A stretch of 64,000 nucleotides of DNA from Zygnema circumcarinatum SAG 698-1b (GCA_037447605.1 CM074807.1:3108990-3172989), one strand, 5' to 3'; shown: positions 24,601-46,321, counted from the stretch's first letter. Translations and numbers: made by a program. The notes: generated by a model not told the origin, from the letters alone.

Positions 24601-27600
24601 AAACCCTGAGCGCATACGCTATGCGGACTGCAAATCTGCAGCTGAGTTACTTGTGAGAATGGTGCTGATACCTTCATTGCAGGTGGAAGTCAGTGAAAGG
24701 AATGGTACAGAGCAAGACTTGGAAACTAGCCATGGCCGACAAGAGAAGCGCTCCTTGAACCCAATCCATGGCAGCAGGGAAGGCCCTCAAGTCTTCACTC
24801 CTCCTAAAAGTGTAGATCGGTCTTGTCAAGGGGAGGAGAATGTGAGCGAGTTTAGCATGACCAAAGACGAAAGCATTCCGGCTTTCAAGAAATTTATGTG
24901 CAGAGTGGTTGTAAGTTATGAGAATCTTGAAGTTAGTCCTCCGCTTGTAACAGTCAAGGAGGCTCTATTGGACTCCCTTGGATCACTTTTGGCAGTAGTT
25001 TTCAACATTCCGAAGCTTGACATACCGGACCGCAATAAAGTCGATGATATCGACGGGGCTGTCTCTGAAGGTCAAACGACGGAAATGGACAAGTCAGAAC
25101 TATCCGATGAGTTGGAGCAATCAAGCAACGGTCTGAAAGGTGAGCAAGAAGAGAAAGGGGAAAAGGATATTCAAGATGTTAGTAGAACCTCGAGTGAGGT
25201 TTTGCGGGAGGTGGATCGTAATCATGAAGGTGGCGAGGTAATGGGGCAGGATCAGGAAAGTAGCACGACTCCTGATTCAAATGTGAATAAGGTAATCTGT
25301 GAAGGGGAACTTGAGAGTGGGGAAGAAATAAAGAAGGGCAAACGAAAGTGGGAGAAATTCAAAATGCAAGGAGGAGATGACATTGATGAGCAGGAAAGTG
25401 TTAGTGGAAAGCGGCGAGCAAACAGCGAGGGAGGAGTAGCTTCCTCGCAAGATAGCATTTCCAGTATGACCAGGAAATGGCATTCAGGTGCGGCTCTGCA
25501 GGGCCAATGGAACCATACTTACTGGGAGGTCATGGAGAAGCTGCCAGGGACTCTCTTACACAGGGCTTTTGAAGTAGTGGATGAAACCTTTTTGGAGGCT
25601 CAACAGCGGATTCAGATTTGGGCACAATACAATGGTCAAACAGAACAATTGCACGCGAGATTAAAAACCCTTGACAAAGGCCATCTCGTTGAATGGCTAG
25701 AGTTGTACGCTTCTGCAGAAAAACTGCAGCAAACGATAGATCGACAGAATGGAGATTATCAAGGTAGTTCCTTAACTGTGGATTTTTCTCTGGTGAAGGC
25801 ATCAATGAGCACAGATTTACAGGTAACCGGGGACTTGTTGAAAAACAAGATAGCTGGAAGCCTTGTCCATGCTTCTGAAACAATTTTGGAGCAGATTGAG
25901 AAGAGCAGACACATACTAATAATGCTGTGCGCCCAACTTGACGAGCCAACTTTCTCTGGAGATAACATGAATGACTTGGTATCTTTCAAGCAGGTATTGG
26001 AGCAGGTCCCAAATTGGCAAAAGACAGTTGCATTGATTCAGCAAGGAATAAATCTTCTTGATGTTGTGTATTGGGACCCGAGCAATTGGGATATGACGAG
26101 GGCAGTTGCAGGCAAATGGAAGGCTTTTCTTGAAGAACTTGAAGAGAAGGAAGGGCATGTGCAAAGTCAACTGCCAGTTTTACGAAGACAGTTAAACGCT
26201 CAGCAGGCCTCTATTAGTGAAGGCATACAAATGTTTTCTCAGGACTGGTCGGTTGACAAGCCTGATTCCGTCAATCAGCAGCCGAACCATGCACTGTCTA
26301 TTCTGCATACTTTTGAACAAAGACTTGCTCATCTGTTTGACAAAGTGCAGAAACTCACAGAGGCCGAGCAGCTGATACTTGACATTCAAAAAAGTCTAGA
26401 CCTTGTTTCAACAATACCGCTGTTGGCTGCCCTAGAGAAGCTGAAGGATGACATCGACGAACTTGGGAAATCATGGGCAGGGCTAGAAGGCATTTGGAGC
26501 AAAATGGAAATGCTGAACTCCTCACCTTTGTTGAAAACTGATCAGAAGTTTGTGAGCTCCCAACTAGAAATGACAGAGGGAAAACTTTCCGAATTTCTCG
26601 GTCGGAGTCAGCTATGGAAGAGTTCTCCCTCCATGCGAAGCCAATCGACCAGCCCCATTGACAGACGTCAGCTGTTTAGCTTTGCAGAGCCATCGCTAGT
26701 CTCCCCAGTAGCCCCACAGCCGCAGATCACTCCTGCCACCCTCATGCTCTCGCATGTTGCCATTTCTTGGCATGAGAGAGTTTCAAAGTGGATGTCTGAT
26801 AACCACATTCTGCAAGAACTGAAGTCAGCCCCGCTACGAGACTGGCATTGGGAATCTCTCCTAACTCGCTTAGGTCTGAGACATGTTCCTCTGGAGGAAA
26901 TCACACTTGGGAACCTCTGGAACATTCAGTTATCCCGGTATGAAGCAGAAGTTCGGGCAACCATACAGGAGTGTTTGGGCCAAATGGCTGTTGAGCAATT
27001 TCTCTCCCGAGTAGAGGGTGAGTGGAAGCAAAAGAATCTAGACATTGTTAGGTATAATGGTTCTGATCGTACGGTGGTGAGGGGACTAGACGAGCATATG
27101 GGCTTGATTTCAGAGCACTTGGGGATGCTAGGGACAGTCAAAACCTCACCCTACTTGGGGCCCTGGGAGAGAGAAGCAACAAATCTAGAGACAATGTTGA
27201 GCAAACTCGGCCGACTTTTAGAGGCCCTGAGCACAGTACAGCAAAGCTGGGTAAGGAGCTATGTTGCTTGAACACTTTCCTGCCATGCCTGAAATCCTTC
27301 GCGATGAATATGTAGGTGCATTTTTGTTCAGAAGGTCCTGTTGAAGAAGCAAAAAAGATCTCTTCCGGATAGGTGGATTCATGGTGCTTGCATTTGATTG
27401 GACGATAGATTCAAGAAACCTGTGATTTTCCACCACTCAGGAACACAGTAGCGTTGGCAGCGTTGATAGCTGATAACGTTTTCTGTGCTTTATTCTGCAG
27501 GTACAACTGGAAGGAATGTTTGGAAATTCCGGAGATGCAGTTTGTCAACAGCTTCCAGAAGAACGCTCTAATTTCAGCCATGTTGACACTGAGTTCAAAA

Positions 27601-30600
27601 GACTAATGGCAAGGCTGAATAGGAAGCCGCAAGTCTCAACCCTGTTGGAAGATCTCAATTTGGAGGGCCTGCTGGACGGAATGGGCCAAACATTGAAGCT
27701 TGTAACTGAGCGTCTACATGCTTTCTTGGAGCAACAACGAGAAGCCTTCCCAAGATTCTACTTCTTGGGTGATGATGACCTGCTGACATTGCTTGGAAAT
27801 CCGAAGGATTTAGCTATGGTAAACTTCATCTGCCCATAAATCTTTGTGAAATGTTCCGGACATCATGTTTATAACTTTTGCACGATTTGCGCAGTGTATG
27901 GCCATGCTCTATGGTTGGATTTGAGAGGGATTTGGCGTCCGTGCTTACAAGTCCCTTGTCGGTAGTTTTCCAGGAACTAGCACAAACCGTTGGCTACGAT
28001 GCTGATGCGTGTACGTTCATCTTGCTAAGCTAACATAACACATAAAATAATGCTTATTAAGTCGTATATGATTGGAGTTAGGAAGGCGTTACGTGAGCTA
28101 GATTCCTGGAATGCTTCCTTGTGCTGGGCTGGTTCACTTCTGGCTGACCCTGAGACTGTCGTTAATCACTTTTGCAGATTCAGAGACACCTTCGCAAGCT
28201 ATTTGTGGGCATTGCATCCCTGCGTGTGGTAAAAAAGAAAAAGGTGACAATGATTACAGCAGTTGTTTCGCCTGAAGGTGAAGAGGTGGTTCTAACAACT
28301 CCCATCTCTTTTGACACGTCTCAAAATGAAGGAGCATCAGGGGTGACTGATGTCTCTACACCTCCAGCATTTGAAGACTCAGTGGTGCCATCCCCACTTA
28401 GAGATACTTCTGAAGGGGCCGCTGCAGTTCTGACTACGTTAGAAGCAGCTGTGCGTTCCACACTAATTAACCTCCTTCTGGGAGCATTTCAGGAACTTCA
28501 ACTTTTAGAGGGTTGGTGGGCATCATGTAATGGGCAAACAGCAGCTGCCGTGGGAATGCCAGATCCATGTTCCATTCCACTAGATTCCTTGAAAGAGTTT
28601 TTAGCGTGGACAATAGCATATCCACTACAGGTGGTAGTTCTTGCTTTGCAGGTGCAATGGACAGCTGTCATCGAGGCTATACTAGATCCGGTTTCCTCTG
28701 AGACTAGAGATACAGAAAATGAGAGGGGAAAAAGGAAACAAGCACTGGTAACCATGGCCAGAACAACAGACATCATGCTCGAAGCTTTGGCAGGCGGAGC
28801 TGCTGAGCCCGGCAGTGCCTTGTCTCGCCGAAGACTTCAAGTTGTGATCACAGTGTTGGTCCATCAGAGAGACACACTCCGCCGTCTGGTGAAACTGAAT
28901 GTAGAGGATGCAACAGATTTTGCATGGCTAGCTTGCACTCGTCTATATCTCAGCATGCCAAAGCGAAAAAGTGAGCAGGAAAGCTCAAGTGGTGAAAATT
29001 TACATCAAGGTTCAGACCAGGAGGAGGTTGCCCATCTCTTGGTCTGCATGGCTGATGCTCGATTCAATTATGGTTTTGAGTATCTGGGTCAAGCAGAGCG
29101 GCTCGTACAAACTGAACTCACAGATCGATGCTTCCTCGCAGTTTCGCAGGCCCTTAAATGGGGGCAAGGGGCAGCCCTTTCTGGCCCCGCAGGAACTGGT
29201 AAAACAGAGACTATTAAGGCTCTCGGAGCCCAATTAGGGCGGTTTGTGGTTGTTTTCAATTGCGATCGCCACTTTGATCTGCAGGCCCTATGCCGCCTGC
29301 TAGCAGGCTTGGCAAGAATTGGGGCTTGGGGTTGTTTTGATGAATTCAATCGGCTGGAGGAAAGGATCTTGTCTGCTGTATCACAGCAAATACTGGCCAT
29401 TCAGGAAGGCCTTAAGCAGCACCATGAGACAGTTGACGTGCTGGGAAGGGCAGTGCCTCTGCACCCTTCGACAGGTGATTTGCCTTTTAAGATACATTAG
29501 CTATCGTATGTTTTTGTCGAAGTTTCTGAGCTGTGCATAGGAACATGGAAAATAAACCTCCCTTGCTCCAAAACTTTGTTAGTCAGACAACGCCTGATCT
29601 GAGTGATTTTAGTCGATTTTGAGTCGGGTCATTCATGCATGCTCCTTGAAATTGAAATTTAAGAACAAGCCGGCACACGATTGGGGACTTGAAGCTCAGG
29701 TATACACGATTTAAGACTGTGCATCGTCATCTCTTCCAGCAATTGTTTCTTCCATTGCAGCAAGCTTGATTCTGGTAATTGCGTTGCAGGAATATTTGTG
29801 ACTATGAATCCAAGGTATGCGGGCCGGCAACATCTTCCAGACAACCTTCAGGCTCTGCTACGCTCCGTCACTCTATCTAAACCCGATGCGGAGGCTATTA
29901 TCGAGGTGCTCCTCTTTGTTCAGGGCTTTCGCACAGCACAAAAGCTCGCCAGCAAACTCGTTCTCTTGTTTCAGGTGAGTTTCAGAATGGCAACTTACGA
30001 GCAATCTTGTCTTCCCCCTTGTTGTTCCTTTCCAACTGCATTTGCTATAATGGACAACCTTGTCCCCACACATTCATTCCTTGCCTAGGCCATTTGTGCT
30101 TTGGCTATTCAACTACTCTTACTACCCGTCTGTTAGTCACAGAAATGCGTGATTTGCGTCATATTTTGTTCATCTGAGGCTTGTGGCTTCGTGAATGGAC
30201 AAAAGTCGGCCATTCCTGCCTTAAAGGTCAACTAAGCAATTGTTTTGTTGCTGTTGACGTGTACCCTATACCTTGTTGACAGATGGCCCAGACAGAACTG
30301 AGTGACCAATTGCACTACGATTTCAGCCTTCGAGCCCTGAAGGGCACAGTCAGCAGGGCTGGACTTGCTAAAAGGAGGTCTTTCGCCCCAAACAACCTTG
30401 CTTCCAATCCCCCTCATATTGCAGGCATCTCCAGCGTGGTAAAAGTCGAAGTTGCAGCTGAGATTGGTAGTCTTGACAGTGGAATGAAAGAGGCACAGCT
30501 TTTAGTTGACAGTGTGTGGGGGGAGATGGCGCCCAAGCTTACCGGAGGTGATGAGGCGGTCTTTCAAGGGCTATTGGGAAATGTGTTTCCCGGTACACAC

Positions 30601-33600
30601 TTACAATTAGAGTCTGAAGCTGCCCTTTTCGCAGCTATACGACAGGTGCTCTTGGACTGGGAGCTGGAGGAGGGTCAAGAATGGCTGGAGAAGACATTGC
30701 ATCTCGCCAAGTTGGTGGAAGTGCATGAGGGGGTGCTGTTGGTGGGCCCCACTTCAGCAGGCAAAACTACAGCCTGGAGAGGTGGGCAGCTGCTTATGTT
30801 TTATCTTAACTATCGACGTTTTCAAAATGTGGACGGATTCCAAACGAAATGCTGCTATAGCACAGCTCAACTCCCGACATTTTAAAAATATTTTGTTGCA
30901 TGTCTCTTTGTGTGAATGATGGGTGCTTGAACCAGTGTAGTCTGTTTCTAAACGCCACTTTTTTCCTCCCAACTCCACCGTATGATGAGGTAGCTGAATC
31001 TGCAACTGATGGGTCGTCCTGTGGTGTTTTCTTTATGCAGTTGTTCTTGAAGCTTTGGGGAGAGTAAAAGGTGTTCATACGACTGCCCACGTGATCGACC
31101 CCAAATCTTTGAAAGTAGAGGAGATTTATGGGAAGCTTGATTCCAGCACCCGAGAGTGGAAGGATGGCATTTTTACGTCCTTGTTGCGCCAAGTCATAGG
31201 GCTTGTGCACGGAGACAATGATGGAGCAGGCAGTGGTGAAGGAAATGGGGCAGGTGGACTCTCATCAGGGGATGGCGCAGTTGAAGAAGCAACTGGATTA
31301 CACTGGCTTGTTTTTGATGGAGATGTAGACCCTGACTGGGTGGAAAACCTCAATTCCGTCTTAGACGACAACAAGGTGAGTATTGAATACCTTTGCCTTC
31401 GCCTTGTTGCAGTAATATTGTCACAACTTTCGCGTGTGAATTATGCAACCTAGACCTCGCATATATACGGCAGATACAGGGTAATCGTTAGTCACCAACA
31501 AAGTTTTAGGACCGTTTTTTGACACATTTATGTAGCCTGTGAACTCTGTAAAAAGTACATTCTCTTGGACCTGAAGTGGCACATTTATTCATGTCTTGGA
31601 ATCAGTAAACAGTCGTCTAAACTTGTTGCCAGATCTGAATTTTCTGTCGCTTTGCTGGTTAAGGCTATGGTTCTCATTCGACTCTCTGAACTCTGACGAG
31701 ATTTACATAATTCTTAACTTTCCTCACTTATCCGAGGTTTGTAATGTCCTGCAGATGCTAGTGCTTCCTAACGGTGAGCGATTGCGACTCCCTTCATGTG
31801 TTCGCTGCATCTTTGAAGCAGAGTCCATCCGACATGCAACTCCTGCCACTGTTTCCCGCCTTGGCATGCTTTACTTCTCCTCTGCAACCCTTTCTTTGCC
31901 CATGGTTATGGCGAGATGCCGGAATCGTTTGAGCAGGGGTGTGGCAATGCATCCCCTTCAGCGATTTGGACATTTGGAGCCGGAGAATTCTGCGGAAGGG
32001 AATGAAGGGCGGAGAGCGGAAACCGTTGTGGTTGAATCGACGGAGGTTGTGGAGGAGGCGGCAAAGAATGATATCGTGGATTTGATGCATGAGGTCAAAC
32101 AGCAGGTATCTGACTCCCACGTGACTGGGAGTCAGCTTCCAGATGCCGAAACTCGCAAGACGAGGAGGAAAGTATGTCAGGAGATATTGTTGCCCTTTCT
32201 TGAAGAGGGCGGTTTAGTTCAGAGTGGGATAGAGAAGGCAATGGATTTCAATCACGTTATGACGTATGTGCCGATGAGGGCTTTAGAAAGCGCACTTTCG
32301 CTGTTGGATGGTAGCATGGCCGAATGGATAAATCATCACGATGATTCAGAGAAAAGCGAGGAAAAATTGCACGAGTCTGCTAAGAGCTATCTTTCAGCCT
32401 GTGTGCTGCAAGCACTGCTATGGGGTGCAGGCAGCTCGATGACGCAAAGTAGTCGAACTGATTTCGGCAATTGGTTAGCAGACTCAGCAAAGAGTATGTT
32501 TTCCAAGCCCCCTGTAAGCAGCCGGAGCCCCGAGACTAACCTAATCGATTTCAGAGTGAAGCTTGGGGAGGAAACATGGTCCCCTTGGAAAGATTCTGTG
32601 CCAACCACCGAAGTTGAACTTGCCAAAGTTGGTAACTCCCGAAGTCATGGACTTGTCCCTACAGTTGACACAACGAGGCATGGACTATTCTTAAGAGCTT
32701 GGCTTACAGAGGGTCGGCCCACCATCCTATGTGGGCCCCCTGGTTGCGGAAAGAGCATGATTGTCGGGGCTTTAGTGGATACTATGCCGAAGGTGGTGCA
32801 GCTTACCATCAAGTTCTCAAGACTGACAACCCCATCGTCCTTACTAAACGGACTAATGCAGCACTGTGAGATCATGCGGAAGCGCATGAGAACAGATGCG
32901 GTGGAGTATGTGCTGCAGCCGAAACATCCTGACGGTTGGTTGGTCGTTTTCTGCAACAGAATAAACCAGCCAGCCTTTGACACCTATGGTTCACAGCCTG
33001 TGATGGCACTATTGAGGCAGCTTTGGGAAAGGGGAGGCTATTGGGACCCATCCAGGCTCGCATGGGTACATGTAGAGCGCATCAAGTGGATGGCATCATG
33101 CATCTCTACCTCGATGTTGGACAATGGTAGCAGTATGATATCATCGCGTTTCTTGAGGCATTCGAGTCTTGTTGCAATCGACCATCCTACGGTTGAAGCC
33201 CTTCACCAGATATATGGAGCTTGGAGCAAGGCGCTCTTGGAAAAGGGAGCCCCAAATCTTATAGCAGAAAGCCAAACTGTGGCTACGGCGATGGTTGACA
33301 TATACATCCGTTGCAAACAAAGGTCTGAAACAGGCCTTCATGCTCCCACCGTCTATAGTCCACGAGACCTCTCTCGCTGGATGAAGAATTTGGAGTGGGC
33401 AATCCTAAAGAGGCAGCAGGCTGTCAGCAATCTAAGAACTCCAATTGCATCATCACCTGCGGTTTCACCACTCAGTGTGTGGAGTATTGCCAGAAGTCCC
33501 CTCCTAAACGAGTATGACAAGCCACTGCAGGGAAGTCCAAATATGTTGACTGGTTGGAGCAGTGGGAAGGAGATAACAGAGGTTCGCTTGGACGACTTTG

Positions 33601-36600
33601 TGAGATTATGGCTGCATGAGGGGTTACGGATATGGCGAGACAGACTATGGGCAGTTGAAGAGAAGGAATGGGTAGATCAGGAAATGGATATGCTGGTGCA
33701 AAGGTTTTTTCCTGAAACTGATGTCGTGTCTTGTATCACTCGCCCGATCTTTTACTCGACCTGGCTTTCATTTGGATATGAACCTGTCACTATGCCTCAA
33801 TTGGCAGAATTCTTAGAGAGGCAGCTGCTGATTTTCCAAGAAAGACAAGCAGTCGACGGCAGCAAAGACACTCCCAATGCGAATCCTGGTTTCCCTAAGG
33901 GCTGCAAACTGCTCATGTCCAAAGACATGGCCGAACGAGTCCTGCAAATGAGCCTTGTCCTGCAGAAACCGGGGGGGCATCTCCTTGTTGCGGGAAACAG
34001 TGGAACTGGAAAATCCACAGTTGCAGGATTTGCAGCGCAGTTAGCAGGTCTGCAGGTGGTAGTGGCTATCACTCACGGGGGATACACGGAAGGTCAGCTC
34101 GATGTTGACCTTTGGGCTCTCCTCCGAAGGGCCGGATGTGACGGAGAGGAGGTCTGTTTGCTGGTCGATGAAGCACAGGAGTTGCAGCCCAAAGCTCTGG
34201 AAAAGCTGCACTCCCTTTTGGCTTTTGGGGAAATTCCGGGACTTATAGGAGATGCGGATTTTCAGGTGAACGCCAAAATTCTGACTGAAAAGTTCATGCT
34301 GAATTCTGACTCTCTGTCCTAGCTTCTCTATAGCAAATTCAAGGCTTTTCACTGATTGTGAGTGGATGTGTGTCGCACGCTGAATGGAGTCGATAGGGCT
34401 GATTGAACGTCTAAATTGCATGAATACGATGTTCCAGACGACTGTAAAAAGAGGAAGATATTGGCGAGATTTGTTTAAGCTGGTCAAAGAATGAGCATGG
34501 CAATAACGCGAATGCCTACTGTATTGAGGGAGAGTAGGAAACCAACAGAACTGAGATTGCCCTGCTGAATTGTTTTTTCCTATTTTGTGATTCAGATCAT
34601 CCTCAAAGAGTGTGATGTTGCAGCCAAAGAGGAGGGCGAGAGTCTGGAGTCTACGGAGGAGCTTTACAACTTCTTTGTGGCACGGGTTTTGAAAAACCTT
34701 CACGTGTGCTTAGTGATGACAGCAACAGGCGAAAGGATTAGAGAATTGGCAATCTTTTGTCCTGCCCTTCTCAGTGACTGCGTTCTCCACTGGTGCACCC
34801 CCTTTTCTGACGATTCCCTGCTTGAAATGGCCATAGTGAGGGCAGCAGAAGCCATGCAAAAGCTTCATATACCCACCCTCGCATTTGAAGGGAAAGATAT
34901 AGCTCAGCAAAGCGGCACAACCAAATCAGATCTTCTGAGAGCCGAGCCTTTAGAGGTGAACAAGGCAATGGCAGGCTGTCTTGTAGCTATACACAAGGAA
35001 GCTGTTCGCGTCTTCAACAACCTTCCCCCCCCTCTGAATACCTGCGCCACACTTGCCTCCTTTCAGGACCTTTTGCAACACTTTGTTACTCTCTTTGGGA
35101 CATATCACAAAACAGCAAGCCAACAGCTTCTCCACCTCGAACAGGGTCTGTCGAAGGTGCAAACTGCAGAGCAAGAACTGGCAGAACTCCGCGTGCTATT
35201 AGCAGAGAAAGGCACAGAGCTGGAACAGAAACGGGCAGAAGCGACTCTAAAGCTGCTCGCTGTAGAGTCTGACCAGAGGCTGGTAGAAAAGCAGCAGAGC
35301 AGTGCTAACCAACTGGTTAGTCAGGTGGAGCAGCAGAAAAGGGACATTGGGGTCCGGAGGGAGGCAGCTCAGCAAGTGTTGGCAGAGGCAGAGCCGGCAG
35401 TGGAGGAGGCAAGGTCCGCAGTGCAATGTATGAAGAAGGCACACTTGGACGATCTGAGGTTCATGCCAAATCCTCCGGATTCGGTGAAACAGGTAACTCT
35501 CAGGATGTTTCCTGATTTAGCAACTTATGTCTGATTTTGCACATTTGAAAGACATGGTTGCATTACGGGACATTCAGAAATTTGAGCTAGGAGAAACTTA
35601 CCTCATTGCAGGAGTTAAGCTCGCTTCTGGGCAGACCTGAGGAATCGTGCAATTAGGTGCATGGCAGAATCTGATGACCCTTTGATATTCTAACGAGGTT
35701 TCTGTCGCGCAATGCAAACAGACTGAATAAGAAGTAAAGCAGAAACTGAAATTGCGCCTTTATTTGAAAGAATGATTGGTGACGAGTTTCTGAACTTGCC
35801 ACTAGCATGTATCACTTTGTACAGTTGTCAAATGACTGGGAGCGGGGATGCACGGACGAGAGATAGCGTGTTTGCTCCATTGCAGTATTAATGCCACCAA
35901 ATTCCTTATTTTGGAGAGAAAATGGGTATGGGTGGTGGATGGGCTTATCAGACCCTTGAAGGAGTCTGCCTCCTGCTCACCGGCTCCAAGCCCACCACGT
36001 GGCAAGCCATTCTGTCCATTGTCCGGCGATCAGACTTCATTGCCTCCATTTTGGCATTCCGCCTTTCATCTCTGAGCCAGTCCATTACATCTCGGATCCG
36101 TGCCGATTACCTGGATAACCCTAATCTATCCTTCAGCATCGTAAACAGGTACATTGCATGATTTTTTGGTCTTGCCTTCAACCTTGCACTTGCCGCAACA
36201 TTTTCTTCTGATCCTGGTCGACAAGCTATGCCATTATTAGCCTGTGTTGGGTTTTAGAGATTCAAGCAAACGGTAGCAGCCAATTGCAACAATGTGGCAA
36301 TGCAATACGAGCAGCTTGAATTAGCCAGTGTATCGCACGCTGAGCTCCCTCAGGGTTGACAGGAGACTACCGTTGTGAAACTATCTTGCAGAGCAAGTCG
36401 GGTCTGTGGTCCGTTGTATCGTTGGCTTGCAGCCGTTGTGGAGTATGGAGAGATTTTAGTCCGCGTGCAGCCACTAAGGGATGAAGTGGCGGGGTTGGAG
36501 GAGGAGTACAACAAAATGCAGCAGCGACTGGACGCATCACAGGTTCCTTTATGATCTTACTTTGCTGGCAGACTTGGTTTTATTCCCCTGACAACTGCTC

Positions 36601-39600
36601 CTAAAGAAACCGTGAAAGCACGTTTTGCACAACTTGTCATAGCCCCCTCCTGCATCTTGGCAAGGGGTGCCTATGAATAGGGCATCTAACGGACACTTTT
36701 TCAACATCTTCTCGTTTACTTCAACAATTTAAACTTGAACATAGAACTTCTTACCCTTCATGTGCATATATAGCCACCCCTTGAAAGTCTAATTGCTGTA
36801 ACTTTCTTGTGCATGCAGGCCCGTAGCAGAGAGCTTAAAAACCAGATAGCACAGCTGCTGGAAGACCATGCTGTACTGGGCAGGCAAGCTTCAATTATAG
36901 CAGCTGAAATGAAAGCTGCTAGCCAGAAGCTGAGGAGAGCCGAAGCCCTTATTGATGGGGTGGTGCAGGAACGGGCCCGATGGTACAGTGAGAAACAAAG
37001 TTTGACAATAGCAATAGGCTCGTTAGCTGGGAAGGCAGCACTTGGAGCTGCTTTCCTCGCCTATCTTGGCCCTCTCGATGAGAGTCAACGATCAGAGCTC
37101 ATGCAGCTCTGGGAGAGCATTCTTGTTGCATGTCCAACCCTTGGTACGAAGCCAAAGATGAACCAATTGGCCGATTTAGTCTGTACAGAAGATGAGCGTC
37201 TGTGGTGGGTGGGGAGAGGTTTGCCGGACGATGATATGGCGCTGCAGAATGCAAGCATTTTGGGAAAATCGCAGAGAGCATTATTGCTCGTTGACCCCTT
37301 AGGCCAAATGATGGAATTTTTCAAGATGTCTTTGCAAGCAAAGTGGCCGAAGGTTGGAGAAGTGAGCGCCATGGATAGCGAGTCGTTTGTAATTGGAGAG
37401 TTAGAATGCGCTGCCAGACTAGGATACCCCCTCATTGTTCGAGATGTTGTAGGCCAACCAAAGGCACTCGTGCCAATTCTATGCCAGTTAGGTTCAAGGC
37501 GAGCTGCAATGCAAACAGTAGTACAGCTCGGAGGGAGAGAAGTGTTTGTTGCTTCCTCTTTCAAGCTCGTGCTTGTGGCAAGAGCTGGTCTTGGGGAGGT
37601 TTCGGAAAGTCTTTGCAGCAAAGTTCTTGTACTCAGTGCAGCACTGACGAAAGCTGGGCTACAAAATACTCTTTTGAGTCGAATAGTGAGGGCATTGAGA
37701 CCAGAAATTGAGGCTCGGAGGACCGAAGCTCAGCAGCTTCAGGGACAATATCGGATGCGGATAACAGAGCTTGAACGCTCCCTACTGTCTGCACTTTCAG
37801 ACAGTCCAGTTGCCTTGGTCGAAAACGAGTCATTGTTGAATGTGCTTGAGAACATCAAGAATGAAGCGAGCGCGTTGGGAAAGAAAGCAGCCGAAGTAGA
37901 GGGAGCTTTGGAGCAGACACATGCAGCAAGAGCTCATTATGGAAAGTTAGCAACAGCATGCAGCCGAGCGTTCTTTGCACTCAAGGAACTGACGACTTTG
38001 AGTCCCCTATATCAGTTCTCTCTCAGTGCCTTTCTGGATGTATTCCAGTACGCATTAGCGAGAGAGAAAGCGAGGGTGGATGGTCTGCACACTGTAGAAG
38101 GAGAGGAGAGAGCTGAACACTTTCTGCTGGAGATATTGTGGACTGTTCTGAATCGTTATTCGAGCAGTTTGCAGAGCGCACATCATGTGCCCTTGGGCCT
38201 ACGGCTCGCTCAGGCAGCTCTTGAAGCCCGGGAGAGCGGTCCGGTGAATGCAGAACATCTCTCCCTTTTGGCAGGTCAGTACCAATGGTTGGTTGTTGGA
38301 GCAGCCAGCACCGGGGAGGCTCTTGATGAGAGAAAGAAAGGATCAAGTACTGGTACAAGCAAAGGGCATAGTTCGGAAGGTGAAATGTGGCAAGGGTTGG
38401 AGCAGTTATTAACCAAAAGGCAGAGGAATGAGCTGGCAAAGCTGTTTTACATTCTGCCACGGGGAAGCCTTTTACTGGAGAAATTTGTGGAGTTCGTCAG
38501 AGCGGGTGATTCCGCAGATTTGACAAGCAGTTCTGGAGAGAGACAACGAGGTTATCCTCGAGCAATTTGGGAAAAAGCAGTCGCTTCTTTGGCTGATTTT
38601 TCTAGTGAACATGAAGCCCCTGGCACTACAGTTGAGTGCACCACTTGCTGCATGAGATTGGCGGACGTTCAAGAAAGGACGCCATGCAGATCCTGTCATG
38701 ACAAAGCCATTTTGGTGGAATTTATTGGTCTGCTTGTCGCAATCGTTGTGAACCCAGCCGAGTTCAAAGAAAAGGCTATGCAGTTTGTGGCGGCTGTGTT
38801 GTGCCCAAGGCCTGCCTCAGCAACAGGTCTTCCTCGTGGGGAGAGCTCTGATGAGCGTAGCGTAGTGCGTTTAGCATTGCCAAACCTGTCCACCTTTGTC
38901 CTCAATGAAAGCAGCAGCACGCGGCCTGTCTTGCTTGTCTGCATGCCCAACTGCGATCCTACGGCTGACATTGCTGCTCTTGCACACCAAGCACACGAAA
39001 GAGGAATTCGCCACTTCGAATGCATCGCTATGGGCTCTGAAGACACTCTCTCTCTCGCAGAAGCAGCCGTGCTATCGGCAGCTCGGGAAGGGCAATGGGT
39101 CGTTTTACAGAACATTCACTTGGCCAGCGGTTGGCTTCCCGCCCTTGAGAAGCTGCTGCGGGGTGCACCTTCTAAGGGAGAGTTTCGTCTCATTCTCACT
39201 ATGGAGGCGGCGGGGCAGAGAGCAGTCCCTCCAAGTCTTGTGGAGGCTTCCGACGTGCATGTTATGGAGGCTCCCCCGGGGTTGAGAGCGAGTTTGCAGG
39301 TGGGTTTTTTCTGCTAGTGAGGAATCACATGTTGCGACCCTATGAAGTTCAGTAAATGAGCTGTGTGTTTCCCACATTGCTTCTAAATGAATCAGAGAGC
39401 AAGAGACGGGGATTGTGGCTCGTTAGAGTCCGTTTACGAACCCGAGATCGGTGACGGCCATAGCCTTTGTTAGCTTGTTACTGAGTTTTAGCACACGGTG
39501 TTATTTCTATGGGGCAGAGGTCTCTTGTCCTGCTGGGGGAGGAGCGAACATTGCCTTTGGAGGCTCTGCGAGTGGCGGTCCTTTTGGCGTGGCTGCATGC

Positions 39601-42098
39601 GGTGCTGCTAGAACGGCTCCGCTATGTCCCCATAGGGTGGTTTCATCGCATAAATTTCAGTGATACGGTAAGCTCATATTCCGATGCATCTTTCAGCCAT
39701 GCAATGTCCAATGCTCCTAGTGCAGTGTTAACCCCCTCCCAAAGCAATTCAGATTTTTTTGATTGCAGTGGTCATTTGTTTCAGTTATCTTATTGTGGTT
39801 GTAAGTGCTGGCAGTATGTCAAAGTCTAAGAGGTGTTCCAACGCTCGTCAAGAAAAACAATCTTCATGAAATTCGATGAGCATGGTTATGTGGAATGGCC
39901 ATCGACCTTTTTGCATATCATCAGCTCAACAACTGTTCAGGCTGACTAACTTGAGAAGAACAATGCTTGACTGGTTGAAAGTCAGACCTTTTGATTGAAC
40001 CTGCCCTAGACATATTGAGAACTTCCTCCCTTTTCTGAATTTGTCAGTTCTAATGTGTTTTAGGAAGCGAGCTACTTGTCTCTTTCTCGGAGTGCACAGT
40101 CTACCTGCTTCTCTGTAATGCGACTCTCGGCTGTAGTGACTAGCTAATCCGAGCAAATGACTTCGTTTTTTTCTATGCTGAACTTCTGCATTCAGGACTT
40201 CCGAACTGCCCTTGCCACAGTTGTTGTTTGGCTACGAGCCTCCTCCACAAAGGGCGACAATTCCCATTCGGGAAATATCCCTTGGACTTCGCTGACAACA
40301 CTCCTTATTGAGACTGTCTATGGACAAAAGCTGGAATCGGAACAAGATAGGGAAATTCTTAGGGCACTCGTTCACCGCTACCTCTCTCCTCCCGCAGGCT
40401 CGGCCGGTTTCACTCTCACGGGTCCCCTCCCCTCACTCGAGTTACCTTCTGACCAAGAATTGCATATAAGCTCTCAGATTGGCGTTGTGGGTTCAGCAGT
40501 GAAGCTGCCCGAGGCTGAAAATTTGCAGGATTACATCCTCTGGGTTGAGAATCTCCCTCAGGATTGTCCTCCTGAATGGTTGGGGCTATGGGCCGGAGCA
40601 GAAGACTTAAGAGTTGGAAAGGAATGTCGGCGAATTCTTGCAGACTTTTGGTCTCTGCAGATTGCAGGAGCACAGGGTGTCACAACGAAGCAGACGGTGA
40701 GTTCAGGGATGGAGGTTGTCACAAGGAAGCAGACAATGAGTTTAGGGATGGAGGGTGAGGTGAAAAAGAAACAGCAAATTTCTCCGTCTTCTCAGCCCAT
40801 CAGAAACGCAATGGTGGTTAATAAGCGCTCTAGTTCACGTGCTTTAGCCAGTAGACCCTTCGTCAATGAAGGCAGTAAGGTAAACAGTGAAGGTGTGTTG
40901 GGTATGCCGAAGATGAACCTAGACATTAGTCAGGAAATGGAGAGATGGCTGACGGATTTGGACGAAGTTGGGTTTATGGAATCAAAAGCTGAAGTGTCCA
41001 GGGGGAAAGTATCACTACCAGCTCCAATCATGCGTTGGCTGATGCGTGAATTTGACACTGGGGCTTCCTTGCTCGGAGAAGTTCGAGATCAACTGAGGGC
41101 AGTCTTGAATTCCGGTATTCTGCACACATCATTGCCACACTCCCTCTCAAAGAGCCCAGCAGATAAGTCTTACCAGGGGGAGGAATTCATGTCGATAACG
41201 AGGCAAGAAGTTCCGCAGAGGTGGCTACAGCTGAACGGTCAAAAGCAGCAATCAACAAGGGGTCCATTGGGACCTTGGCTCATACTGCTCCGTCGTCGAC
41301 TCCTTCACCTTGTTCAGCGTTGCCGAGATATCACTTCTGGGAAGAGTAAAGAATCAGAAGGGGGGGCTGGTAGCATTCTTATTACTGGTGATTGGTGGCT
41401 GGGAGGATTATTCCACCCTCGGTCCTTTCTCAGTGCTTGCAAGCAGGTGGCTTCCCAGGTCTTCCATTGGCCGATAGAGGAACTCGTGCTCTCAGTTCAT
41501 GTGAGATACTCTCCAGATTCTGATCCTTCGAAAAAGGTGAAGGCTGATGAAGGGGTGAATCCACTGATTCGTGTTACAGGTAAAGCTCAAATGTGTCTTT
41601 TTTATTCATGGCTTCAACCGAGTTTTTCTGATTGCAATTATCAGGCCCTGTTGCAGCTCCTACGTCGTTCCAAACATGCACATATCCTCATTTGTTCATG
41701 ACAACTTTTGGACCTGCTTTCACTGTACGGTTGCAGGCTTGCAGCTCCAAGGATGTTTCTGGGAAAGCGGTACTCTCGTTCTCAAGCCCGGCTTGTCATC
41801 GTTGTCAAAAAACATGACTAACGCTTCTGCATCAGACTCCGTGTCAGTTCTGCCAACAGTTGCAATCTCATGGAGTCCGTCGGCTGCTGCCTCACTGAAA
41901 GAAAATGGCGGTGAGGGTGACTCGGAGAGCTCGTCCATTGAGTCCAATTCAGTGGCATCACAGGGAATGGTCGCAGTGCCTGTCTTCTTGGATGAAACAC
42001 GCACAACTCTCCTCTTTTTCGCAAAGCTGAGGGCTAAAGGTAGTGCGAGCTCTTGGCTGCAACAAGGTGCAGCCATTCTTGCTTTGGGCGTTTTATGA
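14933..42098 (+). CDS. DYNC1H1: Cytoplasmic dynein-1 heavy chain, full length, ~30 exons (roughly 5,300-5,500 aa by summing approximate exons)
   Basis: Collinear similarity to dynein-1 from the N-terminal dimerisation domain through tail, linker, AAA1-4, stalk/MTBD, AAA5-6 and C-terminal domain. Dynein-1-type motifs: [103 protein letters not shown], and C-terminal [14 protein letters not shown]...QGAAIL. GT-AG junctions are phase-consistent throughout the motor region. Confidence 0.93.
16730..24356 (+). CDS. Dynein tail (DHC_N1) encoded by ~17 small exons; boundaries approximate
   Basis: Exon peptides in the expected order: [55 protein letters not shown]...[41 protein letters not shown]...[44 protein letters not shown]. 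Confidence 0.75.
19960..20185. repeat. GA-rich polypurine tract inside a dynein intron
   Basis: ~220 bp of G/A-rich low-complexity sequence seen directly. Confidence 0.8.
24684..27250 (+). CDS. Dynein large exon: distal tail/neck and start of the linker (DHC_N2)
   Basis: [22 protein letters not shown]...[12 protein letters not shown]...[16 protein letters not shown]...VRGLDE...KTSPY...VQQSW|V matches the dynein-1 linker. Donor TGG|GTAAGG. Confidence 0.9.
27501..29973 (+). CDS. Dynein linker end and AAA1 (exons 27501-27818, 28179-29474, 29791-29973)
   Basis: [13 protein letters not shown]; [18 protein letters not shown]; Walker A GPAGTGKT; Walker [10 protein letters not shown]; sensor-[17 protein letters not shown]. 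Confidence 0.95.
30282..31375 (+). CDS. Dynein AAA1 small domain and AAA2 (exons 30282-30781, 31041-31375)
   Basis: Sensor-[12 protein letters not shown]; Walker A GPTSAGKT; IDPKS...[16 protein letters not shown]; [21 protein letters not shown]. Confidence 0.95.
31756..34264 (+). CDS. Dynein large exon: end of AAA2, AAA3 and start of AAA4
   Basis: LPNGERL...ATVSRLGM (AAA1 Arg finger intact); VPTVDTTRH; GPPGCGKS; VFCNRINQP (degenerate Walker B); RFLRH; YSPRDLSRW; GNSGTGKST; LLVDEAQ; LAFGEIPGL. Confidence 0.95.
34596..36542 (+). CDS. Dynein AAA4 end, coiled-coil stalk and microtubule-binding domain (exons 34596-35492, 35951-36148, 36391-36542)
   Basis: KNLHVCL; HLEQGLSKV...[33 protein letters not shown]|TLEGVCLLL...TWQAI...[15 protein letters not shown]|[11 protein letters not shown]...VQPLRDEV. 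Confidence 0.93.
36819..42098 (+). CDS. Dynein AAA5, buttress, AAA6 and C-terminal domain (exons 36819-39300, 39519-39667, 40196-41579, 41738-42098)
   Basis: LLVDPLGQ; [16 protein letters not shown]; [41 protein letters not shown]; FRLILTME; [10 protein letters not shown]; [15 protein letters not shown]; [10 protein letters not shown]; PPEWLGL; [17 protein letters not shown]; GLQLQG; stop TGA at 42096-42098. Confidence 0.93.
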
Positions 42099-44672: not shown

Positions 44673-46321
44673 ATGGAGTCGGAGCTGCCATTGGAGCTCG
44701 CCAGTGAAGGGGAAGGGGAGGAGGGCCTTCATCGCCCTGTATGCTCTCGTTGTACGAGGCCGGCATCAGTGTGTCTCTGCAGCGCCATGCCTGACTCACC
44801 TCTGGAGACAAAAACACATGTCATAGTTTTGCAAGTGAGTCTCGTCGGTAAGGAAAGGCTACATATAGTGCAGTAGACATGCAGGAATTTTCAGAATGGT
44901 CAGGCTTTCGTCGTAGATATTACAACATAGGCGCGTTTGAGCTGATTCGCCTTGGTTATTGCTTTGAATGCTGGATGTAGTGAAGGAGGAGGATGGTGGT
45001 TTTTCTCCATAGACGAAAGAAAGTTCTGGAAATCCATCTAACTGCTACAATCATTGTTAAACTCCGCTACAAGAGGAGGTCAAACATTACCGTGCTGACA
45101 GCTTGCAATCTGAACTTTCTTGACTTTTCCTTAACGTATAAGCATCATCGTATTATCATCGTATAAGCAAATGTTGTGCTGAAATAAGCTTTTTTTTCTC
45201 TTGTCCTTTTTGTCATCCTCCAGCATCCTCATGAAGCAAAACAACGTTTAGCCACAGTTCCCATCCTGCAGCGCTGCCTCCGGCACTGTCATGTTGCACG
45301 TGGTCGGCGATTCAAGCGCGGATCTCTTGCAGTCCTTGATATGCTGTCGGAGACTGCAGGACAAGGACTAAATGGAGGATCAGCACACATAGCTTCTGCT
45401 AATACTGAAGTTGGAGAATTTCTCCATTTTCGCAGAAGGCCGTGTTTACTTCTATTTCCATCTATGCGGGCAGTAGATCTTTCGCTCTGGGCAAAGGAAT
45501 ACCGGGCCAGCCGAATAAAGCTTCTGAAGTCAGGGGGAGACGATGGGTTCATGAGCAGCAAATCTCTATTGACCCAGCAGGTAGGGAGTGTTCCAAAGAC
45601 AGGAAAATTGGAGGCGGCTGATCGAATGAAGAGTAGAGGAAAGGATGAGTTCGGGGGAGGCCATAGTGCAAACGAGGAAATCTATGGAGCATCGCAGGTT
45701 CGCTCTCTTCAGAGTGGTATCAGTCATGCTGAAGAACATGATGCAGCTGAGGGTTATGTGCTTATCGTGTTGGATGGCACATGGCAGCACACGCGAGAGA
45801 TGATGACTGCAAGCGAAGATTTTCTGCGTCGGTTTACTCAGCCGGTAATTGGACGATCTTTCTCCCCCTTTCATTGCCGTTCCTCACTCATTTTAGCTTT
45901 TCTTTCCACCCTCAAATCTTCAATTCCTTGTTCTATACTTTTCCAATCATCAGATTTGTGGGAATTCTTGACGAATTCAAGCATATGTCCTCGTCAGGTG
46001 TTTTACATCCTCGCTTAATTTTGTAGAAAGTGAGGCAATTCTCAATGCATTCTGAGCGATTCTTTCCTTGTGCTCCAGGTATGCCTTCCATTTGACACGA
46101 CAATTGAAGGTCCACCGATGGGTTCCCGAGGATTCATTGTGAGGAAGGAGCCATGCGAAGGGTTTATGAGCACCATGGAGGCTGTGGCTCGAGCTCTCTG
46201 CATCTTGGAAGATGAAGGAGATCAGATTCAAGAGCAGCTTGTGCGGGCACTTGGCCGAATGGTAGAGCTTCAGCAGACCCATATCGCCTCAAAGGCGCAG
46301 GATCAAAGCGCAGCCTCTTAG
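44673..46321 (+). CDS. DTWD2: DTW-domain protein (tRNA-uridine aminocarboxypropyltransferase, DTWD2/TapT-like), 3 exons
   Basis: CSRCTRPASVCLC; VLQ|HPHE; LLLFPS; IVLDGTWQHTREM; VRKEPCEGFMSTMEAVARAL...MVELQ. Confidence 0.9.

Follow-up and report, generated by a model that had tools for sequence, protein, structure and literature searches.

A dynein-1-type heavy chain of Zygnema circumcarinatum with a degenerate, probably binding-only AAA3 site

The 64,000-nucleotide stretch of the Zygnema circumcarinatum SAG 698-1b genome analysed here (GCA_037447605.1, CM074807.1:3108990-3172989; the window, with coordinates counted from its first letter) contains on its + strand, at 25475-41701, the motor part of a multi-exon dynein heavy chain, identified by Pfam, tblastn and a splice model. 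The gene is real and transcribed, and it probably encodes a dynein-1-type chain in which hydrolysis at AAA3 was lost in evolution, leaving a static nucleotide in AAA3 and a motor driven by AAA1. Dynein-1 normally has consensus Walker motifs in both AAA3 and AAA4 (Roberts 2018, PMC6103457) and its release from microtubules is gated by AAA3, ATP at AAA1 causing release only if AAA3 is in a post-hydrolysis state (Liu 2020, PMC7683685). What appears to be new here is that a motor of the dynein-1 type has an AAA3 like that of dynein-2, predicted to bind nucleotide only; on the best reading of the sequence, the loss would be lineage-specific and old.

Residues lost and retained at the AAA3 site

Judged by its residues, the hydrolysis chemistry of AAA3 is absent: the Mg-coordinating Asp, the catalytic Glu, the sensor-I Asn and the Arg supplied in trans are all gone. 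The acidic pair DE of Walker B is replaced by NR (AAC AGA, 32955-32960, within VFCNRINQP), sensor I has Ile in place of Asn (ATC, 33102-33104, within WMASCIS, where the neighbouring A and P are both changed to S), and the arginine finger of AAA4, which completes the AAA3 site in trans, is an Asp (GAC, 34776-34778, within CPALLSDCV), the preceding Asn, 97% conserved, being replaced by Ser. A fourth change affects the “D-P-G-R” loop past sensor I, whose Arg, 99% conserved, is a Ser (33129-33131). Several of these changes require at least two base substitutions. The preliminary description of this DNA had listed the first three losses, and all of them were recovered, with the motifs and codons of Walker A, Walker B, sensor I, sensor II and the finger at the positions it gave; the loop Arg is an addition to its list.

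The nucleotide-binding residues of AAA3, i.e., the P-loop and the sensor-II Arg, are all retained. The P-loop (Walker A) reads GPPGCGKS (GGG CCC CCT GGT TGC GGA AAG AGC, 32733-32756) and is intact, the consensus being GPPGSGKT and the Lys being present in 264 of the 264 sequences that cover the position; sensor II, YSPRDLSRW (33354-33380), keeps its Arg. With the P-loop kept and the catalytic Walker-B Glu gone, the site has the features of a degenerate, binding-only AAA+ site, in which nucleotide binding itself is a prediction; from the intact P-loop and sensor II, we infer that the pocket still holds nucleotide. Also retained is RFLRH (33147-33161), which by positional homology with ATVSRCG of AAA2 and PALFNRC of AAA4 is the likely finger-type Arg motif of AAA3 itself, facing the AAA2 site. 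The “PGR” Arg of AAA3 was considered as a finger toward AAA2 and set aside, the finger-type motif being the later xxxR(C/H), according to the PALFNR match to A. nidulans R3086.

The sites that flank AAA3 are in a different state. AAA1 is fully canonical (Walker A GPAGTGKT, 29183-29206; Walker B CFDEFNR, 29333-29353), and the AAA2 finger that completes it, ATVSRLG (31845-31865), keeps its Arg; the Walker A, Walker B and sensor I of AAA1 and the AAA2 finger are all letter-perfect. In AAA4, Walker A (33993-34019) is intact and Walker B, LLVDEAQ (34158-34178), has its DE pair. A change of the AAA4 sensor-I Asn to Thr was dropped as a meaningful loss, as this position is only 45% conserved in dynein-1.

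Placement of the residues and conservation across the motor

The replaced residues are nearly invariant in the family. In an alignment of 88 full-length dynein-1-type proteins, conservation is 99% for the Walker-B D, 99% for the Walker-B E, 99% for the sensor-I N and 98% for the R of the AAA4 finger; among 270 dynein-1-type sequences, 267 have the Walker-B D, 269 the Walker-B E and 269 the sensor-I N. Calls of “T” at the finger position in some added fragments resemble end-of-fragment misalignment and were disregarded. Pairwise alignments, alignments of 150, 88 and 270 sequences, and a profile agree on the placement of the residues, with conserved flanks around each site, and the comparison with Dictyostelium, human and the 270 sequences leaves no ambiguity on the replacement of Walker B, sensor I, the loop Arg and the finger. 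In the phmmer alignment with Dictyostelium cytoplasmic dynein (3vkg), LVVFCDEINLP pairs with the Walker-B segment of the window gene and GACNP with ASCIS. The assignment of the finger is supported by an ascomycete hit, in which the K-E-R spacing of 64/423, from the P-loop Lys through the Walker-B Glu to the PALFNR Arg, equals that of A. nidulans nudA K2599/E2663/R3086, the last of these being the AAA4 finger described by Qiu et al. Numbering of the yeast construct via E2488, as given in the title of a PDB entry, places the PALFNR-type finger at 2911; the construct has a shortened stalk and the residue numbering breaks beyond it.

The distribution of losses along the gene is uneven. Near-invariant columns, defined as those at least 90% conserved in dynein-1, are kept at 93% in the linker, 97% in AAA1, 90% in AAA2, 81% in AAA3, 64% in AAA4, 82% in the stalk and microtubule-binding domain, 81% in AAA5 and 100% in AAA6, with 41 of 276 lost gene-wide. 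The chance that all four hydrolysis residues fall among the 41/276 losses is about 4e-4, and six of the eight near-invariant losses in AAA3 lie in the motifs of Walker B, sensor I or the following loop. As far as the sequence can tell, the gene is maintained and has selectively lost a single function, a pattern other than decay. The least conserved module is AAA4; in its large domain (33954-34245), the RIDR helix preceding the P-loop has L in place of R (33954), and changes also affect several positions of the aromatic core.

The preliminary description had favoured an evolved loss over a sequencing error, and this view holds: the codons are unchanged in the transcripts of four studies, several of the changes involve more than one base and the losses target hydrolysis residues, sparing those that bind nucleotide. 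Its further argument, that three independent substitutions point to evolved loss, stands only in part; the substitutions are real, but they are not independent evidence for selection because, after the first inactivating change, the others were free to drift, and what counts is that the binding residues have not drifted.

An AlphaFold2 model of the exon 31755-34265 has a mean predicted local distance difference test (pLDDT) score of 82.5, with most of the AAA3 core above 90 and only two insertions disordered; its best structural matches are the human and Dictyostelium dynein-1 motors (template modelling score 0.74-0.76). The model covers the AAA3 exon alone, as the finger sits in the next exon, past an intron with stop codons.

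A comparably degenerate AAA3, accompanied by canonical AAA1 and AAA4, was found in only one other of the 270 dynein-1-type sequences (P0138). The groups nearest to the window gene in the tree all have intact AAA3 sites, and for this reason the loss is considered specific to this lineage. Two fragmentary dynein-1-like proteins, P0116 and P0130 (Dentiscutata erythropus, a glomeromycete), show a partial loss, with N-E in Walker B and, at the finger position of AAA4, a Cys; these may be additional copies in decay.

Gene structure and transcripts

Along the + strand, the Pfam domains follow the order DHC_N2, AAA_6, AAA_7, AAA_8, MT, AAA_9, Dynein_heavy, AAA_lid_11 and Dynein_C. The splice model comprises 13 exons and 4108 codons with zero internal stops, and it encodes the linker, AAA1 to AAA6, the stalk with the microtubule-binding domain and the C-terminal domain; the presence of a linker, of six AAA+ modules, of the stalk and its microtubule-binding domain between AAA4 and AAA5, and of a C-terminal domain places the product in the dynein heavy chain superfamily. 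Six junctions, from 29974/30283 through 36148/36392, are verified by transcript contigs, while the remaining ones and the extreme C-terminus of the model are predicted by homology and are approximate.

Both exons that form the AAA3 site are verified by RNA. The first (31755-34265, 837 codons) encodes the end of AAA2, the whole AAA3 and the first half of AAA4; it is bordered by GT..AG introns at 31376-31754 and 34266-34595, and its joints are found in transcript contigs of four runs. The next one (34596-35492; Pfam AAA_8 and MT) encodes the rest of AAA4, to which the arginine finger belongs, and the beginning of the stalk, with joints at 34260/34591 (+5) and 35489/35949 (+3) present in all four runs. 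Across 31753-34260 and 34591-35489, contigs from four studies have zero differing letters and zero indels; they are regarded as transcripts because they skip four GT..AG introns, and their lengths, up to 16 kb, fit a full-length mRNA. DNA runs from three studies contain all the sampled 31-letter words of the stretch. An assembly error would have shown up as reads with GAY GAR, AAY or CGN/AGR codons at the sites, and the four transcript data sets are identical to the assembly; likewise, no alignment places other residues at the catalytic positions.

In run X7, short contigs with a depth of 4.6-7.1, compared with 67 for the exons, lie inside the introns, at 31445-31728 and 34362-34553; most simply, they represent unspliced pre-mRNA.

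Family assignment and relatives

Both of the large exon regions tested score best against dynein-1. With the AAA3-AAA4 open reading frame (ORF) 31596-34322, which includes the AAA3 exon, as query, phmmer against PDB scores Dictyostelium dynein-1 at 448 bits and human dynein-1 at 400, the best axonemal chain following at 165 bits and dynein-2 at 145; the AAA5-AAA6 exon scores 287 against dynein-1, 201 against dynein-2 and 181 against a further class. Those relatives of the window gene that carry a name are annotated as “dynein heavy chain 1, cytosolic” or as fungal dynein-1. Membership of the dynein-2 heavy chains is contradicted by their rank, far under dynein-1. Identity to known dynein-1 members in the motor is about 29-35%; among representatives of about 15 billion proteins no match exceeds 41% identity, and among exon-sized proteins none exceeds 34%, the window's own protein being absent from these collections.

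A FastTree phylogeny of 88 dynein-1-type sequences, built without dynein-2 or axonemal outgroups, places the window gene in a supported (0.95-1.0) long-branch group of non-opisthokont sequences, where it is sister to the intron-poor clade of P0120 with a support of only 0.21. Of the Walker motifs of AAA3 and AAA4, three are consensus and the fourth, AAA3 Walker B, is NR. By sequence similarity, the gene appears to be of the dynein-1 type; this name was chosen over a strict assignment to the DHC1 clade because the tree covers dynein-1-type sequences only and because the AAA3 Walker B is non-consensus. Published surveys describe green plants as being without dynein-1, and Kollmar 2016 lists “orphan” heavy chains without class assignment, one of which comes from a streptophyte alga.

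P0120, P0148, P0128 and their relatives (L001-L004) are intronless dynein-1-type genes of 4400-4630 aa, located on compact eukaryotic contigs and always adjoining NMD3. They have GPPGCGKS and YSPRDLSRW in common with the window gene and, like it, carry an insertion at the Lis1 ring site, in the same position; their AAA3 is intact. On one contig of this clade there is, in addition, a gene with a CpcD (phycobilisome-linker) domain, a hint of red algae.

The Lis1 ring site

The AAA4 helix equivalent to the Lis1 ring site of yeast, located through an alignment with the yeast construct P0127 via E2488, reads LLIFQERQ (33825-33908), with K changed to L, D to E, E to R and E to Q, and it departs from the dynein-1 motif. 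The yeast residues are presumably K2721, D2725, E2726 and E2727, numbers that agree with the residues found there. The second Glu of the motif is 97% conserved and is an Arg in the window gene; the motif as a whole is only moderately conserved outside opisthokonts. Compared with most dynein-1, about 16-20 extra residues (AVDG...KGCK, 33849-33908) follow it. The residues KDEE are those that bind Lis1 (DeSantis 2017 preprint), and the altered ring site would be in keeping with AAA3-Lis1 control having been lost as a whole module.

Comparison with known dyneins

With the dynein-1 chains (DYNC1H1, Dictyostelium DhcA, yeast Dyn1 and A. nidulans NudA), which are by far its best match in sequence and fold, the window gene shares the domain order, the canonical AAA1 site with its AAA2 finger, the P-loops of AAA3 and AAA4 and the AAA4 Walker B; unlike them, it has N-R in the AAA3 Walker B, Ile in sensor I and Asp at the finger, an altered Lis1 ring motif and large disordered insertions. 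The resemblance to dynein-2 (DYNC2H1) consists of a deviant AAA3 Walker B and of a non-hydrolysing AAA3 with nucleotide in a motor driven by AAA1, which in the window gene are predicted; moreover, the Lis1 sites are not conserved in dynein-2, and the ring motif is altered in the window gene. However, the gene lies outside the dynein-2 family (145 versus 448 and 201 versus 287 bits) and both of its Walker motifs in AAA4 have stayed consensus; the similarity is convergent.

The residues affected, AAA3 Walker-B Glu and AAA4 finger, are the same that were changed in the mutants yeast Dyn1 E2488Q (PDB 7mgm) and A. nidulans nudA E2663Q and R3086C. These mutants carry single changes and are slow or mislocalised, and the finger and Walker-B mutants bypass LIS1, whereas in the window gene at least four pocket residues are changed and, unlike the engineered proteins, it presumably had time for compensation.

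The closest parallel in the state of the site is P0138 (4604 aa, from an intron-poor 37.8-kb ENA metagenome contig, ERZ28612991), which has canonical AAA1 and AAA4 sites and keeps the P-loop of AAA3, GPLGSGKS, with V-D in Walker B, H in sensor I, S in place of the loop Arg and C at the finger position. P0138 differs in its sensor-II Arg, changed to Ala, and in an Arg located one residue ahead of the finger position. In the tree it is not close to the window gene, but sister to P0012, which has a normal site; this suggests that AAA3 loss in dynein-1 occurred more than once.

Proposed mechanism and alternative explanations

An AAA+ site needs its trans finger and its sensor I to close around ATP. 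In the window gene, AAA3 would hold nucleotide with neither hydrolysis nor gamma-phosphate sensing across the AAA3/AAA4 interface, and it would act as a static structural nucleotide pocket, as AAA2 does in all dyneins and AAA3 does in dynein-2. The fully canonical AAA1 site alone would drive the motor cycle, while the AAA3 gate and the Lis1 ring site reading it would no longer be used; the gate would most likely be fixed in a permissive ADP-like state and not in an inhibitory ATP-like one. The whole gene appears to be under purifying selection, with relaxation only in the regulatory AAA3-AAA4 sector.

As a specific mechanism, an AAA1-only motor in which AAA3 is a static, permissive pocket is favoured, with an even chance of being correct; on the best reading, and by analogy, it would be functionally convergent with dynein-2. 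It is preferred because the trans finger and sensor I are gone, because the corresponding Aspergillus finger mutant is healthier and because dynein-2 is a competent motor. In dynein-2, the Walker B motifs of both AAA3 and AAA4 are deviant, the sites hold ADP stably, and Lis1 sites are lacking, yet the motor works (PMC6103457). Compared with the AAA3 Walker-B mutant of Aspergillus, the mutant in the AAA4 finger is far healthier, and it bypasses LIS1; the requirement for LIS1 is changed by mutations of either kind (Qiu 2021 preprint). The background on which the preliminary description relied, namely AAA3 gating, the effects of mutants, coupling to Lis1 and the deviation of dynein-2, is consistent with these sources (PMC7683685, Qiu 2021 preprint, PMC6103457).

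Several points weigh against this interpretation. Nucleotide binding at AAA3 is a prediction from the intact P-loop and sensor II. Blocking AAA3 hydrolysis strongly slows dynein-1 of yeast, Dictyostelium and Aspergillus and raises microtubule binding (Qiu 2021 preprint, PMC7683685, PMC6103457); since such mutants are slow, the default expectation is a slow motor, unless compensating changes are present. No orthologue above about 40% identity was found in the searched collections that could show the same state in relatives. The placement in the dynein-1 clade comes from a tree of dynein-1-type sequences only, and the structure model covers the AAA3 exon, the finger being in the next one.

The most direct competitor on mechanistic grounds is an AAA3 locked with ATP that is never hydrolysed, which would turn the protein into a slow, high-affinity microtubule tether, mainly a tension-bearing anchor or a very slow motor, with communication from AAA1 to the stalk blocked as in the E/Q mutants. 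The strong slowing and poor microtubule release of AAA3 hydrolysis mutants in yeast, Dictyostelium and Aspergillus speak in its favour, as do the intact P-loop and sensor II; however, the trans finger and sensor I, needed for ATP-specific closure, are gone and the site may not respond like that of an E/Q mutant, conservation in AAA1, linker and stalk is of motor grade, and dynein-2 is an example of motility with an AAA3 that does not hydrolyse, so that such a tether seems unlikely. Between an AAA1-only motor and a slow tight binder, we lean to the former. It is also rather improbable that a canonical dynein-1 chain is encoded elsewhere in the genome and that the window gene is a paralogue with a specialised role, or an “orphan” dynein, whose simplified motor reflects sub- or neo-functionalisation. 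This explanation is compatible with the proposed state of the site and would alter its significance; it draws on the very long branch (no match above 41% identity among about 15 billion proteins), on the position in the tree among long-branch non-opisthokont dynein-1 with a local support of 0.21, and on the orphan chains of Kollmar 2016, one of them from a streptophyte alga. Against it, all the tested exons score best versus dynein-1 by a wide margin, and a second copy becomes less probable given the reported lack of dynein-1 in green plants.

A decaying gene or non-functional relic, with the catalytic losses as the first visible damage, would agree with the strongly relaxed AAA4, where 64% of near-invariant columns are kept, with the long disordered insertions and with a constraint that is not demonstrable by any orthologue. 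This is very doubtful in view of a frame open for more than 4100 codons over at least 13 exons, of correct splicing, steady coverage in four studies and transcript contigs up to 16 kb, of near-invariant columns kept at 97% in AAA1 and 93% in the linker, and of damage restricted to hydrolysis residues, the binding residues being spared. Hardly credible is an artefact at the catalytic positions, for which nothing was found in favour: the DNA runs of three studies, the transcripts of four studies and all the alignments concur. An assembly error was ruled out by transcript contigs of four studies identical at all the sites, and misalignment by the concordance of the pairwise and of the 150-, 88- and 270-sequence alignments.

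The Glu to Arg change in the AAA3 Walker B and the Arg to Asp change in the AAA4 finger reverse the charge in opposite senses, and both positions approach one and the same gamma-phosphate. It is conceivable, although improbable, that the two pair in a salt bridge and form a nucleotide-independent latch of the interface; such a latch could replace the ATP gamma-phosphate as the “glue” of the interface and impose one conformation regardless of nucleotide.

Other features of the locus

Two lineage-specific insertions in the AAA3 exon are transcribed and predicted to be disordered. The first, of about 58 residues, lies in the AAA2-AAA3 region (31959-32132; pLDDT below 50 at exon residues 69-126), aligns poorly to Dictyostelium and is crossed by transcript contigs without a joint; the second, of about 40-55 residues, follows the sensor-II helix of AAA3 (33447-33566; pLDDT below 50 at exon residues 565-604) and is contiguous in transcripts, the ORF residues 603-664 being unaligned to Dictyostelium. 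At the other end of the gene, the C-terminal part of the model (40196-42098) is probably wrong, as its last residues resemble read-through into an intron; the + strand ORF 41571-42098 may carry the true last exon of the heavy chain. Further downstream, the ORF 45341-46018 (+) encodes a DTW domain of the tRNA-uridine aminocarboxypropyltransferase type, whose nearest Atlas cluster is dominated by Streptophyta with a score of 0.85, which is a lead only.

Significance

In the dynein-1 field, AAA3 is regarded as an essential gate for microtubule release and as a sensor read by Lis1, and everything known of it so far was learned from engineered mutants with single changes, and these are slow or sick. 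Whether dynein-1 needs the AAA3 site can rarely be tested in nature, and the window gene offers such a test. If it is indeed a natural, compensated AAA1-only dynein-1, it could be compared both with the mutants and with dynein-2, and questions such as the minimal nucleotide logic of cytoplasmic dynein and the second-site changes that rescue a dead AAA3 would become testable. The latch, if true, would be an evolved nucleotide-independent lock in a dynein-1 motor that is also without Lis1 control, in a lineage said to be without dynein-1. The simplified regulatory half-ring could be a stage in the loss of dynein-1 from green plants, or an adaptation to life without Lis1.

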